Position numbers and translations under genes: made by a program
Assembly (NCBI GenBank): GCA_021613535.1
Contig: CP075496.1
Span: 3,410,001 to 3,474,000, forward strand
Direction of reading: 5' to 3'
DNA from: Adineta vaga
Taxonomy: Eukaryota > Animalia > Rotifera
DNA length: 64,000 nt
In this document: positions 11,755 to 21,600 of the stretch, one piece after another
Layout of the letters: each line of letters starts with the position of its first letter
Position numbering within the stretch: position 1 is the stretch's first letter
Notes under the pieces: model-generated
Seen by the model: the letters and a program-made list of their open reading frames with translations, nothing else
Told to the model about the DNA's origin: nothing
The model's database searches: none

Positions 11755-13017
11755 TGCGGAACAATATGCTACGTGTTATAAACTTTCTATATCGATCTGA
11801 AACATTCACTCAATTTAAGATAGAACAAAAATAATCAAACATACATGTGTAAGAAGTCTGATTCTAGTTAAATCATCTTATTAAAATGATGAATGCTATC
11901 TCGTATTCGTCATTCTAAGTAATTGGTTTCAGATTTGTATCATTGATTTAAACTTTTTTCTATACGAATTACTAATTACGTTCATCATTTCTAAAAAACC
12001 TTAAAGAACGAGAAAAGTACATTTAAAAATCTTTGACTTCTGGATGATATGATATGTCTATCAGTACAAATCTATCCTTCAATACAATATTCATATACTC
12101 GTATCGTATACATACATACATATAGTAGATATACAAATAAAGATAATGTATAGTGTATGGTAGAAAAAGTTCTATCGTTTAACCTATCAATAGTGAATGT
12201 ATTTTACACTATCGACATCTACATTCGAAGATTACTCATTTCCTTTCCTAGTGAAACCAAGAAGACTAAAATGATGGATTGTGAAATACACAAACATAAG
12301 AGATCTATGAAGACCAGGACTTCCAATAGAATGAGGTTGAGATCTTCCATGGAGTGATTGTTCTGTTCCGTAGTAAGACGAAAACTCTAGAAAGAGATCA
12401 TCATATTAATTTAGTCCTTATAACTTTCCAAGATGAAAGTATTCGATAATAAAATATATATTCTGATCCTATTTTAAACGTCTCACCAGACGTTGTCTAT
12501 CAATAAAACATGAAAACTAATTTGTTTTCTTCTCGAATAATTCACAATAACAAATAAACATATCGAATGACATCGAAGTGAGAAATAATGTCATTGATAC
12601 ACTTGTCAATGGACTTCATTTACCATTTGATTTTTATTTCATCGATCTAAATGTACTGACGTAATAAGTAATTTAAATACGTTAATCGATGTACAGTTGC
12701 AACGGTAAAGATATATCTCAATATTAGCACTAAATTTCTAAACAATTTATTGAATTGAAAAACATGTATAAAATCGATGTTTATTGATGAAAACCAGTTT
12801 TTGTTGAGAACTAATCAAAAGAAAACCTCAAAAATTAGTAAAAAAAAACGAGCATAGTATTAAACATAATGAAGTAAGAAAGTGATATCACCAAAAATCG
12901 TCGACAGAAAAATTCAGTTAAGAAAGTTATTACTCACAAAAAAATGCTTGATTTCTTTTTTATTGTTCTTACTTTTCAATTATTATTAAAAACTTTAATG
13001 TAAATTTCGAAATTCCC

Positions 13018-14281
13018 TTAAACAAATGTCGTTGATGAATTCCAAACTATAGGCATAGCAACAAACGCTAGAACAGCCAAAAAACTATTGATAATACCAA
13101 AACCCATTGCCTGGTTACCAGCAATTGTATCAAGTGACTTTAAACATCCATCGGTATAGAAATGATTGACAGCGTTGTTTTGGTTTGACACACAATCTTT
13201 AAAACAAAAAATTAAATATGTATTTCCTTTTTTTAAAGCATGCATTCATACGTACATGTAATCGTTGCATCACTAACTGTTGTAGCTTCACTTGTACAAC
13301 AAGAATATGGAAATGTGACACCGTAGGATAATGGTAAACCATAAATATCGCCATAGGTTCCAACTGTTTGCCGTTTTTGTCGAACGAGATTCGTGAGAGA
13401 AACGGAATCTTGCTGATGGAAATTATTAGAAACAGCATCTACGTTTCTTTTGGCATTTTTAACAGCGGCAGCAGCTGTTGTCGTGGTGGTGGTGGTGGTG
13501 GTAGTGGTACTCGTCATTGTTCCTGTTGTTGTCGTAGTAACGGTAGTCGTTGTAGTATTTGAAGGTGCGACAAGTTTAACATTTGCCCAATCCAGCCATG
13601 TGTGTGAACCACAACATTCATATTTTGTTTGGAACATATCAATTCTATCTTGAGCATCTGAATCACTTGCATATGCATTCATACTACTCATAAATCGTGT
13701 ACTGACAAAACCTAAAGATTTTGCATTAATAATAATCGCGGTCACTAATGACGCAATGGCCATGATGCCCACTGCACCGGCTAAACCAAATACAACTTTA
13801 CCTAAACGATAAAAAAAGAGTTCGTTCATATTACAAAATGTATTCTTTCGAAGAAGGAAAAGAAATCAATAACTATGATTCATTGCATATGTACGATAGG
13901 TTTGAAAATAAAAAGATACACCCAAATTAAACGACATTTCATAGTCAGATATGAGTCATACGAAAGAAAACCTATCATAAATATATCCAAAGACCAAAAA
14001 AACTGTGATTCATATGCAAGTACCGATTTAATACAAGAAAAACGTATATTACCTATTTTTGGAGAATCTGTCATAATTGAGAATGCACCTACGATACTAG
14101 TTACCAATCCAAATATACTAATAGCAATATTAAAACCACATAAACCTATTTGTGGACGAAAAAAATCGCCATATTTTCGAAAACTTCCAATAATACCGAT
14201 ACTAACGCCGAGATGAATGATTGAAAATAATAGAACTAAACCCATGATACTAAGTGGAAAAATACGACCCTTAATTTCCAT
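13018..14281 (-). CDS. atypical tetraspanin paralogue 1 (Thr-rich insert, KNAKR and RQKR sites), 3 exons
   Basis: Four hydrophobic helices; EC2 motifs QTKYECCG, PYSCC and GC before TM4; poly-Thr insert; C-terminus STTFV. Confidence 0.85.
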
Positions 14282-14427
14282 GTTGTTTGATAATAAAACT
14301 AAGATAACAGTTGATCAAATTTTGATGAAATTATCTAAAACGAAATAACAACAAACGTTAACACATTGAAATGTAGTCAAAAGCAAAACATGTAAGAGAA
14401 AAAAAAAGGAAGAAATATTATACGATG

Positions 14428-14442
14428 TAACGCATGAATGAA
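14428..14442. promoter_or_regulatory. 15-mer taacgcatgaatgaa shared upstream of the tetraspanins (Pax paired-site-like)
   Basis: Identical copy at 18270-18284 upstream of paralogue 3; degenerate copy caacggatgact at 16545-16556 upstream of paralogue 2. Confidence 0.45.
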
Positions 14443-15108
14443 GAAACACATAAAAGGACAGACAATTTATGACTCCATGAAAATAATGGTGATGCTGTTT
14501 TTTTGCTTTTACGCATAGGTATTTATTCACGAACAAAAACACAATCGGCCTTCACGATGAAGTTGATATTTTTAAAGATTAAAACAGATTTAATTCGTAA
14601 CGTTATACATAAGAATGCATACTTTACAAGGATTTCGAATCAAATCAAGTTGTACAACGTTTCAGAATGAAATTTTCTCTTAATTGAAATTGAGTTTAAT
14701 GAATTATATTAATGAAAAACACAAAAAAAACTTGTAGTTTTAATACAAATTATTTATATCGTATCATATTTATTTGACCTTATGTAAAGACACGTTCTCG
14801 ATTAATAAATTTCAGATGCATTGCAAACAGTTTCTTTCGAAGAAAGAAACTCAAAGTAAATGATAAAGCAATATGTTTTACAGAGAATCTTCATTCAATT
14901 AATAGCTTTATAATCTATTTCTAATACAAATCATTATTGATATTGTGTATTACATGAATATAATTACTATAACCTTCTTTTCAAGATCATAGCTGTCTAC
15001 TATATCGTTTTCAATTTTTGATTATATGAATCGATTTATATAAACAGTAAAACGGTGATAGAGTAGAAGACATTTATAATCAGTTTTTATTTAGTATTTC
15101 ATGACATT

Positions 15109-16427
15109 TCAAGTGTTTGCCGTTGTTGATGGCAGAAAATTACTGTATGACATATCAGTTTGATATTGAACTGGATTATATTGATAGGGTTCATTGCTAT
15201 ATTGTTGATATTGTGCTATCTGTGGATTATTAGGCATGCTTTGTGTATAATTTTGAGAAGAATCTTTTTCGAGGAGCAATGGAATAACGGCGATTGAAAG
15301 AACAACAAGAAAACTATTGATAACAGCAAGACCAAGTGTTTGACCAACAGCGAATTTGCCAAGTTTCTTTGAGCATCCATTAGGATGAATAGTATTTGTA
15401 ACATTATTTGCATTTGATATACAATCTAAGAATAAAATTGAAAAACAAATTTAAATCGATTTATAATTTGTTTTTATACGCCAAAAAGAAATTATTTACA
15501 TAAATTGGCTAGATTATCTGTTGATGAGAGATCATTTGTACAACAAGATTGTGGTAATGTAACACTAATTGATGTAAGTAAACCAACGATGGCATCAGTA
15601 TCTGTTTGGGCTTGTCGTTTTCGTCGAACTCCAGTTTGAACATCATTATTGAACATTTTTCCTGCTAAAACGGTTGTGTCAGCAGTAATTGTCGATGATG
15701 TTGTATCTGCATTTGTAGTTGAAGAAACAGTAAATACTGTCGTAGTATTCGATACGATAACTATTTCTGTTGTAGTGCTAGTTGTAGCCGTGGTTGTCGT
15801 GAAAATGATTCCTCCGTCGGTAGTAGTCGTTATATTGAACTGTGTAGCAGCTGTTGTTGTGTTCAAACCTGTAGCGATGGTTGTTACTGTATTATTAGTG
15901 CTCGGTGCTGTTGCATTTAGACCGACTGTCATCCAATCTAACCACGTATCTGAACCACAACAATCATAACTGGTTTGAATTTTATCAACAATATTTCTTG
16001 AATTTTGACTATTTTGATAATCAACCAGACGACTTTCAAAATGTGAACTAGCATAATTTATTGCTAACGAATTAATAATCAATGCAGTAATCAATGAAAC
16101 AAGTGCAAAGAATGCCAATGCAATGCTAGCAAATGCAGTTATTTTACCTAAAATAAAATACATAATATTGCAGATGATTAAAATTAGAATCGACGTACCC
16201 AATATTAATCGATTAGTTAACAGTGCCAACAGACCAAATATACCAATGACAATTCCATAAATACTTAGGACAACATTGAAAATAGCAAGACCTCTTTCTG
16301 GCTTGAAAATATCAGCATAATTTCGTACTTTGACGATAATACTAATACTAACACCGAGATGAATTATAGCAAAGATGAGAATCAATGCCATAAAGACAAT
16401 GCCAAATAGCCTTTTTAATCCTTGCAT
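15109..16427 (-). CDS. atypical tetraspanin paralogue 2 (long Thr-rich insert, RRKR site), 3 exons
   Basis: Four TM helices; QTSYDCCG, PQSCC and NGC. 51-nt intron at 16198-16148. The last exon encodes TM4 and a Q/Y-rich tail ending at 15109. Confidence 0.85.
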
Positions 16428-16875
16428 TATATCAATGTATCGTTTGTACCAATTTGTTAATAGATAAAAATATCTATTGTATGATGTGAATATGGGATAG
16501 ATTCTTTATATTCAAAATAATGATGACGATAATCATAATATAAGCAACGGATGACTAGAGATATATGGACAGAGAAAAGAATAAACATAAATAAAATAAA
16601 GAGAAAAAAGAAATATATTTAGAGAAAGTTATTGAGTCTATCATGAATCAAGGTGATGCAAACGAAAAACGTGAAATATATAACGTGGCGTCAGATATCT
16701 TGTTTAAATTATACGTAACATATCGATAGGGATAAATACTACTAATTTATGTTCACTCTTCTTGTTTATGAATTAAATGTTATCGAAAACTGACTGAATA
16801 TTCATTGAGATTATATTTTTGCAAAAAAAATTCACAAATAGATAATTATACAAGTATTCTATTAAAATTTTAATG

Positions 16876-18181
16876 TTATTGATAAACTGTATATGTCGGT
16901 GCAGCATAGATTGGAGCGGAATACACTGGAGGAGCAACATTCCCCGTTGGATAGTTATACTGTCCATTTGGAATACTAGGATTCATGACATAACCTCCAT
17001 TTTGCATCTCTTGATATTGTGGTTGTTGGGTTCCATCTTGTAGATCATCTTTATCTTCTGCTTTATTTTTTGGAGGAACCATATGCGTAAGTACCATAAC
17101 AAATACAAATGAAAGTATAAACAAACAAACATTTATAACAGCAATACCAGTTATTTGAGAAACAATAGTATTTGCAACGGGTCCTAAACATCCACTTACA
17201 TAGAAATTCGTTGTACCATTTCCAGCATTAAATATACAAACTAAATAAATTCAGTAAAAATGATTGTATTACTAAATGTAGAGGTATAGACTTACATCCA
17301 CCAAGTGTATTAGCTGTAGCAGTTCCTCCATTTTTACAACACGACAATGGTAAATTGATAGTATAAGTTGTAGGTAAGCCATAGATACTACTACTAGAAG
17401 CTATATCTCGTCTTAGTCGCATAGCTTGATGTAAAGGATCTGATTCTTGTTGTAAATCTTGACGACGCTTTCTACCAGAACTACCTAGTAACAAAAATAG
17501 TAAGCATTATTCGAAACTTTCAAATGATAAAAACATACCAACAATTGAACCAGTATTTATACCGTTGCTAACTCCAGTACCTACACCGGTGTTGGATCCA
17601 GAACCAGTAGTAATTACTGTGCCACCTGTACCTGCGTTGTTGCCTGTACCTACAGTTGAAGCACCCAATGAGATTCGTCCCCAATCAAGCCATAAATTTT
17701 CACCACAACAATCATATCTTGTTTGTATACTATCCACCACATAAATAGAATCATCGTTCGAATTGTATGAATTCATACGATACTCCATACGTGATCTTAA
17801 ATAACCAATTGCTTGAGAATTTAGAATAAGTGCAGTAATCAATGATGCCAATGAAAGAATACCTAATACAAGCGCACAAATCGATGCAGGTCGAACTAAA
17901 AGTATATATATCTATGTATTTTTTGACATTCCAACAAGAAAGAAATAATTACATAGACTAGAACGTTGTGTAGTGATAACAATCAAACTTAATATACCAA
18001 CTATAATTCCAAAAATACCAAAAACAATATTGTATATAGCTAATGCGACTGGTTGTTTAAATATATCCTTATAACGATTAAATCCTTTAGCAATGCCAAT
18101 ACCAACACCAAAATGAATGATTGAAAAGATTAAAAGAAGTGCTGCTACAATTAAACCTCGTATTCTTGCTGACAAAGCCAT
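16876..18181 (-). CDS. atypical tetraspanin paralogue 3 (Gly/Thr insert, RKRR and RLRR sites), 4 exons
   Basis: Four TM helices; QTRYDCCG, PLSCC and SGC; P/Y/Q-rich tail containing PPVY. Confidence 0.85.
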
Positions 18182-18697
18182 TTGTACGTTTTAATCTTAT
18201 AAAATTTCAAAAATATGCGTTACCGAGTGTATTACGTGCTTTTATAGTATTTAGTTAAATCTATCTATATAACGCATGAATGAATATAAATACACCGAAA
18301 TACAGAGAGGATCGAGTACATAATTTTGTTTTCCTTTAGAAAACATTTTACTATAAACAATAGATCATGCTTTAATATGAATCGTGGACGTGCAATTAAT
18401 TGTACTCAATATGCACGTAGTTTTGTTTTGCTATAAATTAGTCATAAATAAAAAGAAAAGATATCTTATGACGTAAATGTTTTAATATACTTTTTCGTTT
18501 TCTTTTTTTTTTCGTTCTGTTGTTATCAAAAAATGATCACCAATGAATATAGCTCTTCACTTTCATCTTTTTTAAATTAATAAAGAAGACAATAGACTTC
18601 GTTTGTAAAAGGTTTCTTTTTATATGGCAAAGAAATAGACAGACAAATATATATCATTTGGACAGACAAAAGAAAACGAAAACGAAAAGTAACTGTA

Positions 18698-21600
18698 TTA
18701 GACAACACATTCGTGAGATGAAATAAAACTTTTCATATTTGTTGAACGATCAATGAGTGTTTCAGGTTGAGGATTCGGAATTGTCGATGCTGAAGATGAC
18801 CTTGAAAGATTTAAACTACTAAATCCATAATCTGTACTTGAAGATTGTGGAATCGGTGGTAAATCATTCAAGTATATACATGTTGGATGTTGATTTTTTC
18901 GTAATAATTCAGCTAATTTAATATCATATTGATACGCAGATGTTGATGGATACATTGGAATCGTTGCTTCTTTTCGATTAGACCATGTATCAGTTGATGA
19001 TGCTGTCGATGAAGTAGAATGTCCGTTCACAATACATGCCGAATCATCTAAATAGAGAGATTATTGAAAAAGAAAGTTTTCAATTTTTTTTATTTTAAAC
19101 TTACGATCATCATCACGAATTGTCGAATCAGATGAACTTTTATATTGATCACTTGCATTGTCAATCTACGAAAAAATAAAACAATCAATTAATAAATAAT
19201 AAACGAAAGTTTTTTCTTTTACTTTTTCATTATTATAATCATCGTTATATTGTAAGAAACTATGATGATGCATAGAAGCTAATTTCTCATCACGTTGTCG
19301 TGATTTTCGACAACATAAACAAATAATAATTGAAAATAGTATAATACATATAAATGTAATTGATAAAGCTAAACTCATTGCATAAATTAATACTAAACGA
19401 TTATCTGTTGATCGAAATAATTGACAGGAATTTAAAAGTGAACTATTACATATATCAATTTGAAGTTTATGAATGGAATTATTTTGTGTATAATCATCGA
19501 TTAAATTGAATAATAAAAGATATGATGAAGCTAATGGATAAGATATTAAACGAAGTTCACCTGATGAACTGATATTCCACCATGATGCTAAATTACTATG
19601 ATTTAAATAGATTCTTGGTTCATATGTATGATTATTGAAGGTTGTTATATCGAGAATAAATGCAATGTGATTTTGTGTATTGATATCAATAGTTGTACGT
19701 TGAAGAGATAAAGGTAAAAGTTTTGGTAAATATTCATCAGTTAATGAATTTGATTGAAGATTTATTGTTAAGATTTGTTTCGTTGAACGAGCATTGATGG
19801 AATCATAATCTGTTGCAGTGATTTCAAATTTATATGATAATGATGAACATGTAGTCATGGAAGATTCATATGGAATGTAAACATAACCAAGAGAAGTGAT
19901 ATTAAGAATCAAACATGGATCGAATGAATGAATTGAATAATGAATAAGACCAAATAAACCTGAATCAGCATCTACCGCTGAAATTCGTCCAAGAACAATT
20001 CCCGGTTGAAGTATTGTTTTCGAATGTGTCCAATTATATGATTGAGATTGATCGAATTCAGGTGAATGATCATTTATATCATAAATACGTAAGCTAATTT
20101 TGATTTGATTTGATAACGATGGTTGTCCATGATCTCGTAGTTCAATAAGAAATTCTAAATCAATTGTTGTTTGATGTTTCTCTTGAAATTTCTTTAAAAT
20201 TTCGAAATCAATCGATTGATTTAAACTCATTTCACCTGTTTGAGAATTAATAATTAATAAATTTGTTTGATTCAATAAACGATATTCCACACGAGCATTA
20301 TCACCTAAATCACAATCATATGCATTTAATCGATCGATCACATAACCAATAGGATTATTTTCATTCACATGATAAATTGTTGAATTTGTTAATAATTTTG
20401 GTATACAATCATTGATATCTGTTACATTTAATAGAACAACTAATTGTGTATGTAATGTTGGTGTACCAGAATCATGTGCAAGAAATTGAATGTTATTATA
20501 AAGAGCTTTGAATTCTCGATCGAGCTTTTGATGAAGTATTAAAGAATAAAGTTTCATATTTTGAAATGTATTTTGATAAATTAATTTATAAATTAATGGT
20601 AATGGTGGTTCACTTGTTCGTAATTGTAGATATGGATTTCCATTAGCTTGAAAGAAAAATAAATTCAAGGTAATGAAAAATTTACTTAACAATTGTAAGT
20701 TTTAAAATATTCTATGAAATTGAACAATAAGTCAAACAAAGTGATACTTAAACGTCATTCAATTGTTCATGGCATAAAACAACTAGGCGATGGATTACAT
20801 CATTTTGTTATTCTAAGTGAAGTGTTTTATAAAAAGTACTCGTAAGAATTACTTCATTTTTTTTCTATCGAACAATAATATATGCACAATTTAGAATTAA
20901 ATGTGTTATTCTTTAAACTATGACCTTGCTCAAATAGTTCAATACTTGAAAAAACCTTTTTTTTCCTTGTAAGAATCAGTTACTTACTGAAAGAGTCCAG
21001 ATCATTAAGAATAACATGAGCAATTGTTGTACCAATAGATGTATTTTCAGGAATGAAAAGAACAGTTTTGTCATTATCTTTGCGTTCTAATGTTGTATTG
21101 CCTAAATTTAAGATAGAATTTTTATCGGAGATTTTAATGTACTGTTTTACCTTCCACTAAAATTCTCATAGAAACAGGATTATCATTAATATCAATAACA
21201 CGAATGAAGATATTTGCATAAGTTGGAAGGGAATATTCAAATGCTTTAATTGTTAATCGATAGGATTTTTCTCGTTCATAATCTAAAGTTTTACTCAATT
21301 GAATTTGTCCAGTTAAACGATCAATAATAAATGGTGATTCAGTTAATAATTCATAGAAAATCTTCTCATTTTTATCACTAATTGCTTCAATATTTAAAAT
21401 TGTTGTACCAATAACTGTATCTTCTCGTATATCAATATTATAGACTGATTGTAAGAATGTTGGCATTGAATCATTCATATTTAAAATTCGAATATCTAAT
21501 TGAATGGAATCAGAACGTGATTGGTCACCATGATCCGATGCAATTAATGTCAATGAATACGATGTTTGACGTTGTCGATCAAGTGATGAACGAACAATTA

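Follow-up and report, generated by a model that had tools for sequence, protein, structure and literature searches.

The window analyzed here is a 64,000-nucleotide (nt) stretch of genomic DNA from Adineta vaga, a bdelloid rotifer (C4:3410001-3474000), with positions counted from its first letter. It contains three tetraspanin genes in tandem on the minus strand at 13018-18181, as an earlier note made from the DNA letters had proposed, and their large extracellular loops carry long low-complexity inserts and multibasic sites. We designate the paralogues P1, P2 and P3, of which P3 is the upstream-most gene; these names are distinct from the protease subsites P4, P3, P2, P1 and P1', which refer to the residues around a cut and are always called subsites below. 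The gene models were derived from open reading frames (ORFs) and sequence.

13018-14281, minus strand: paralogue P1 (I4U23_018175), 317 amino acids (aa); exons 14281-14053, 13801-13256 and 13196-13018 (stop included).
15109-16427, minus strand: paralogue P2 (I4U23_018176), 397 aa; exons 16427-16199, 16147-15500 and 15425-15109.
16876-18181, minus strand: paralogue P3, 379 aa by exon sum; exons 18181-17953, 17895-17539, 17484-17296 and 17240-16876.

The P1 and P2 models are exact matches to two annotated A. vaga 'hypothetical proteins', P0015 and P0001, respectively. The first exon is 229 nt long and ends in phase 1 in all three genes, and the introns that they have in common are placed alike. 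Transcript contigs from four sequencing studies were aligned to positions 12800-18400 of the window. All seven predicted introns were recovered as GT..AG joints (CT..AC on the plus strand) in spliced contigs, among them the first intron of P2, which is in frame and 51 nt long, and the contigs ran unbroken across 13256-13797, 15500-16144 and 17536-17895, the insert regions of P1, P2 and P3, respectively. Thus, all three genes are transcribed, with their inserts retained in the main transcripts. Expression of all three genes was seen in four studies, which together with the confirmed introns and the two exact protein matches rules out a pseudogene or an annotation artefact. Removal of the inserts by splicing, a possibility raised by the earlier note, was ruled out for the major transcripts, since no joint falls inside any insert; contigs can miss rare isoforms.

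To establish the family of the proteins, they were compared with the tetraspanin profile PF00335 (cut-off 32.1 bits). P2 and P1, queried through their database matches P0001 and P0015, scored 64.9 and 57 bits over positions 6-216 of the 225 in the profile. For P3 the exons were queried singly, and exon 2 alone gave 27.7 bits, below the cut-off, while the P3 orthologue P0043 (70-75% identity) gave 81.1 bits. When a profile of the family was compared with solved structures, it matched Tspan15 (7.8e-15), CD63, Tspan7, CD53 and peripherin-2 (4.3e-06). An AlphaFold model of P1, built from a 62-homologue alignment, had a predicted local distance difference test (pLDDT) score of 78.5 and helices at residues 4-37, 42-71, 74-118 and 276-314; the model of P2 contained four equivalent transmembrane (TM) helices. 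An earlier run with a 17-sequence alignment had given pLDDT <50 over residues 141-306, so that the large extracellular loop (EC2) was not usable. The 62-sequence alignment bettered the fold, with the basic-site region still at low confidence. In a fold search with the P1 model, the best PDB matches were all tetraspanins (ROM1/peripherin-2, uroplakins, Tspan15, CD53, CD9 and CD81). In the predicted models, with their four TM helices, the first extracellular loop (EC1) is small and EC2, which joins TM3 to TM4, is large. CCG, PxSCC and two later Cys residues are present in P1, P2 and P3, forming the six-cysteine EC2 pattern, and C139, C140, G141, P241, C244 and C245 are invariant in the 62 sequences. 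P1, P2 and P3 are true tetraspanins, every tetraspanin-defining feature tested being present.

When 1.84 billion cluster representatives were searched with a profile, 188 proteins were returned at E<=0.001, 84 of them at E<=1e-10. Family members scored up to 324 bits, against <=56 bits for the generic tetraspanins that were looked up (from an ant, a centipede, a mite, Schistosoma, an oyster and Ciona). The named members belong to A. vaga, A. ricciae, A. steineri, Rotaria magnacalcarata, R. sordida, Rotaria sp. Silwood1 and Didymodactylos carnosus, which are bdelloids only and represent all three bdelloid orders. Because the named members are all bdelloid and the score gap to generic tetraspanins is large, the subfamily so far appears, on its named members, to be restricted to bdelloids.

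A second tandem trio with the same gene order was located on A. vaga chromosome 1 (C1:8953639-8958644; piece L021:640-5650). In A', which is P3-like, a tiny Gly/Val insert precedes RRRRRR, and a peptide of 18 residues separates this from RQKR, with Gln as the next residue. In B' (P0031) the interval is Ser/Thr-rich and 165 aa long, and the basic site is RKKR, again with Gln after it. C' (P0060, I4U23_002865) has 36 residues in the corresponding interval, and has lost both insert and basic site. The A. vaga subfamily is thus made up of six genes in two duplicate tandem trios. In a quick tree, the P1-, B'- and P3-type clades each contained both Adineta and Rotaria members, and the paralogues are therefore old. 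The P2 clade comprised A. vaga and A. ricciae only, and Didymodactylos adjoined the P3-type clade.

The long low-complexity insert that had been described between CCG..W.DW and P.SCC was found in all three paralogues. The EC2 features of the window are as follows.

13608-13616, minus strand: CCG of P1.
13383-13586, minus strand: EC2 insert of P1, comprising a Thr-rich stretch, KNAKR (13446-13460) and a 21-aa linker (13383-13445).
13371-13382, minus strand: RQKR of P1, then Gln; family-conserved convertase-type site, 20 residues before PYSCC.
13296-13310, minus strand: PYSCC of P1.
15954-15962, minus strand: CCG of P2.
15627-15932, minus strand: EC2 insert of P2, Thr/Val/Ile/Asn-rich, with five N-x-S/T sequons, contiguous in transcripts.
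15615-15626, minus strand: RRKR of P2, then Gln; conserved site, 20 residues before PQSCC.
15540-15554, minus strand: PQSCC of P2.
17702-17710, minus strand: CCG of P3.
17540-17680, minus strand: EC2 insert of P3, Gly/Thr/Asn-rich, ending at an extra intron (17485-17538).
17408-17473, minus strand: paired basic sites of P3, comprising RKRR (17462-17473, then Gln), a 14-aa connecting peptide (17420-17461) and RLRR (17408-17419, then Asp), the last at the family-conserved position.
17336-17350, minus strand: PLSCC of P3.

The gap from CCG to PxSCC measures 133 aa in P2, 99 aa in P1 and ~95 aa in P3, and ranges from 43 to 245 aa across the subfamily; it is ~11-38 aa in most of the generic tetraspanins at the weak end of the family search. 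The interval from DW to PxSCC comprises 92 aa in P1 (Thr 29%, Ser plus Thr 36%), 126 aa in P2 (Thr 33%, Ser plus Thr 40%, with its five sequons) and ~91 aa in P3 (Ser plus Thr 32%, Gly 30% in the exon-2 part, no N-x-S/T sequon). The inserts are predicted to be disordered, with pLDDT <50 for P1 residues 157-211 and for the P2 insert, so that the structure prediction suggested in the earlier note yielded the tetraspanin fold with four TM helices and a disordered insert.

Such inserts could be neutral low-complexity expansions in a permissive loop, with the basic sites as functionless relics. The hypervariable length and sequence of the inserts fit this explanation, as do one (ACC)n microsatellite in P1 (13483-13508) and the gene C', which still scores as a tetraspanin after its loss of insert and site. 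However, no tandem repeats were detected in the inserts apart from that (ACC)n run, and Thr is encoded by all four codons, from which it follows that the Thr-richness is maintained at the protein level. Composition and N-x-T sequons are also kept between the A. vaga and A. ricciae orthologues despite sequence drift, and all three genes are expressed. Conservation of the basic site, described next, bears on the same question.

A site of the form R-x-[K/R]-R was found in 52 of the 72 family sequences with a readable region. The remaining 20 contained R-x-x-R (4), [K/R]R (5), or none or a single Arg (11), and degenerate members retained R-x-x-R or K-R with Q as the next residue. Among the 52 members with the full motif, the cut point precedes the Pro of PxSCC by exactly 20 residues in 45, and Gln occupies subsite P1' in 50. 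Already in the first search, R251 and R254 (subsites P4 and P1) were invariant in 17/17 homologues and the next Gln nearly so, while the upstream insert was unalignable. Column counts over 63 non-redundant sequences gave Arg at subsite P1 in 48, Arg at subsite P4 in 41, Lys or Arg at subsite P2 in 43 and Gln at subsite P1' in 41, with Lys outside the five commonest residues at subsite P1. By these counts, conservation of the site equals that of the adjacent Y-G-G-I-x-G-L-P block, and the consensus at the insert end reads S-[P/L]-x-x-Q-x-[V/I]-R-x-[K/R]-R-Q-x-x-S-x-Y-G-G-I-x-G-L-P-x-S-F-x-V-T-L-P-x-S-C-C. The comparison of R-x-x-R with the flanking insert that the earlier note called for therefore favours the site, which is kept across bdelloid orthologues and paralogues far better than its flanks. 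Conservation equal to that of structural residues, in clades each holding Adineta and Rotaria members, stands against the view of the sites as relics, and we consider neutral expansion very unlikely.

As the earlier note had observed, each paralogue has one such site followed by Gln, namely RQKR in P1, RRKR in P2 and RKRR in P3. The family-conserved position is occupied by RQKR in P1; in P3 it is occupied by RLRR followed by Asp, instead of by RKRR. Subsite P3 is variable (R, K, Q, E, H, I, L or V) and subsites P4, P2 and P1 are fixed, a pattern expected for recognition of the furin/kexin type and not for a generic basic patch. No R-x-[KR]-R was present in EC2 among the generic tetraspanins of the same family-search result list. 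Candidate enzymes are encoded in the A. vaga genome, where PF01483 proprotein-convertase P-domains gave 11 matches above the cut-off at several loci on five of six chromosomes. The sole variant within any basic site across the four studies was a synonymous A>G at 17411, in an Arg codon of RLRR, seen in two studies.

The stretch that follows the P2 site (15588-15605, minus strand) reads TDTDAIVGLL, compared with S-x-Y-G-G-I-x-G-L-P in the family. Two non-synonymous variants (15590 and 15598), from the transcript contigs of one study, fall in this divergent stretch.

From these data, convertase cleavage of the EC2 loop into two disulfide-linked chains seems rather probable. Several observations weigh against it. 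The motif of P1 lies at the edge of the region with pLDDT <50, inside a predicted low-confidence helix (residues 212-221), which bears on its accessibility to a protease. The Val/Ile/Phe stretches of the P2 insert are drawn by AlphaFold as low-confidence strands. Pro makes up only 1-2% of the P1 and P2 inserts, unlike classical proline/threonine/serine mucin domains. The 11 of 72 sequences devoid of a basic site include A. vaga C', and cleavage would therefore be dispensable for the fold. Finally, the family members other than the named ones come from metagenome or read-archive contigs, for which the cluster look-up gave no taxon names. Owing to the scarcity of Pro, the term mucin-like, which the earlier note had applied to all three inserts, is only loosely apt for P1 and P2 as a compositional analogy to their long Thr runs (Ser plus Thr 36-40%), and is wrong for the Gly/Thr-rich, sequon-free P3.

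The predicted helix and the motif-less members would also suit an alternative in which R-x-K/R-R-Q is left uncut and has a structural or binding role, for instance towards an anionic glycan, a lipid head group or a partner protein, the protein remaining a single chain with a long glycosylated loop. The motif is furthermore part of a longer conserved block that extends ~10 residues upstream and ~25 residues downstream. The pattern of its subsites, however, is the one expected of a convertase substrate: Arg at subsite P1, where Lys is not among the commonest residues, Arg at P4, Lys or Arg at P2, and a free subsite P3 that admits Glu, Gln, Ile and Leu. The motif is lumenal and placed at the edge of a disordered region, a second basic site frequently occurs upstream, and the P3-type clade has conserved its sites as a pair. 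We therefore regard an uncut role as unlikely.

The earlier note had further proposed that paired sites excise short peptides from P1 and P3. The idea fared well for the P3-type clade, which retains both basic sites from Didymodactylos to Adineta and Rotaria, along with an [S/T]-P-L-x-x-A-[V/M] motif that immediately precedes the second one. It did not hold for P1, whose KNAKR is a simple dibasic KR with no Arg at subsite P4 and is absent from the A. ricciae orthologue. Across the family, 28 of the 52 site-bearing members have another [K/R]R no more than 45 residues upstream. The extra phase-1 intron of P3 lies precisely where the Gly-rich insert gives way to the first basic site; it is confined to P3-type genes, with none there in P1- and P2-type genes, and A' has an intron at the same position (piece L021:1183-1239).

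The conserved pair and the motif that ends the 14-20-residue peptide, together with the frequency of upstream sites, raise the question of whether the family encodes a prohormone-like precursor, in which the connecting peptide is released as a secreted signal and the tetraspanin body is its carrier. Against this, P2, its A. ricciae orthologue and many other members are single-site, and the upstream site of P1 is missing in A. ricciae. The intervening peptides are unconserved except for their last 6-7 residues, even between P3 and A' of A. vaga, and carry no amidation signal. A hormonal precursor appears quite improbable.

P0064, a metagenomic P3-type sequence, has its Gly-rich insert joined directly to YGLPSTY..PLSCC and is without both sites and the connecting peptide, as if precisely the excisable segment were deleted. 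A rule by which insert and site are always gained or lost jointly was tried and rejected. C', P0058 and P0064 are without both, whereas short-insert members of the P3 type retain their two sites.

In CD9, the disulfides are Cys152-Cys181 and Cys153-Cys167, and both CC(G) cysteines are thus paired with later ones (PMC7105497). With the CCG cysteines bound to later Cys residues, a cut between CCG and PxSCC would therefore leave the halves disulfide-linked. We propose a maturation pathway in which the insert is N- and O-glycosylated in the Golgi or late secretory pathway, followed by cleavage after R-x-K/R-R by a furin/kexin-type proprotein convertase. P3-type members, and roughly half of the remaining family, would undergo a second cut at a basic site 7-38 residues upstream, by which a short connecting peptide is excised. 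Pairing of both CCG cysteines with Cys residues C-terminal of the cut would yield a disulfide-linked two-chain tetraspanin. Its N-chain would consist of TM1-3 and a glycosylated stalk with a new free end, and its C-chain of an N-terminal Gln, the YGGIxGLP..PxSCC block, TM4 and the tail. The near-invariant Gln, as the new N-terminus, would probably be cyclised to pyroglutamate. Finally, the closed EC2 loop would be converted into a free-ended glyco-brush on the cell surface, anchored via TM1-3.

The strength of these proposals differs. On the conservation of the site, which is unusually high, P1-, P2- and P3-type proteins are candidate two-chain tetraspanins. For the whole combination of a bdelloid two-chain tetraspanin with a convertase cut at a fixed point, a pyroglutamate-capped C-chain, a glycan-brush N-chain and peptide release in P3-type members, we see the chances as evenly balanced. 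A function as surface coat is the weakest part of the account and much less certain than the cleavage.

Research on tetraspanins has treated them as compact proteins that organise membrane microdomains and are not cleaved, and the variable region of EC2 has been used by engineers as a grafting site. The bdelloid proteins have the same four TM helices, CCG, PxSCC, six EC2 Cys residues, PF00335 match and fold as canonical six-cysteine tetraspanins, which are CD63-like and of which Tspan15 is the best solved-structure match. They differ in the length of the variable EC2 segment and in the conserved R-x-K/R-R-Q, which is unseen in the generic tetraspanins sampled. Peripherin-2/ROM1 and uroplakins Ia/Ib, which ranked highest in the structural comparison with the P1 model, have an enlarged EC2 in common with it. 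Their enlargement, however, is a folded domain, in contrast to the low-complexity bdelloid insert, and the peripherin-2 match is weak at the sequence level. In the uroplakin system, the furin site is on the partner UPII and not on the tetraspanin.

Some surface glycoproteins, for example filovirus GP1/GP2, are matured by furin into two disulfide-linked chains and have a mucin-like region immediately upstream of the cut. Like cleaved membrane mucins or dystroglycan, they combine a heavily glycosylated disordered region with a basic convertase site that borders it on the C-terminal side, and their chains remain associated. The likeness is one of analogy, with no homology: those proteins are single-pass, whereas the bdelloid protein is four-pass and would have both chains embedded in the membrane. 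The two conserved basic sites that flank a 14-20-residue peptide in P3-type members, with disulfides expected to bridge the chains, are likewise reminiscent of proinsulin-type processing. Here too there is no homology, the bdelloid protein being membrane-embedded and many of its family members single-site. In the literature, no report was found of a tetraspanin cut within EC2 or of a furin-cut or mucin-bearing tetraspanin, nor was anything relevant found on rotifer tetraspanins. The earlier note had likewise named no described equivalent, and no described counterpart was found for an enlarged low-complexity EC2 with a conserved convertase motif.

The C-terminal cytoplasmic tails are Gln/Tyr/Pro-rich in P2 (15109-15290), P3 (16876-17130), A' and B' (piece L021:1700-1915), and P1 is nearly tailless. 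PPxY-like motifs occur in the tails of P3 (PPVY) and A' (PPTY), and an ending of the form Y-x-x-Y-Q-stop is common to P3, A' and B'. These motifs may act as WW-domain/Nedd4 or tyrosine-based sorting signals. Upstream of the trio, a minus-strand ORF at 19169-20692 codes for cadherin repeats (PF00028, 6.2e-16) with a TM segment after them; the gene is protocadherin-like and unrelated.

The retention in Adineta and Rotaria of a 100-200-residue, putatively glycosylated insert together with a precisely placed convertase-type site, and of a variant in Didymodactylos, would have consequences for both the fold and the animals. If the proposed processing is correct, the tetraspanin fold tolerates, and perhaps exploits, a loop that is cut but stays joined through the CCG disulfides, and the bdelloid proteins would be the first tetraspanin subfamily with a maturation dependent on endoproteolysis of EC2. 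They might then take part in building the glycocalyx of these desiccation-tolerant animals, and would offer a candidate surface-coat component for bdelloid biology.

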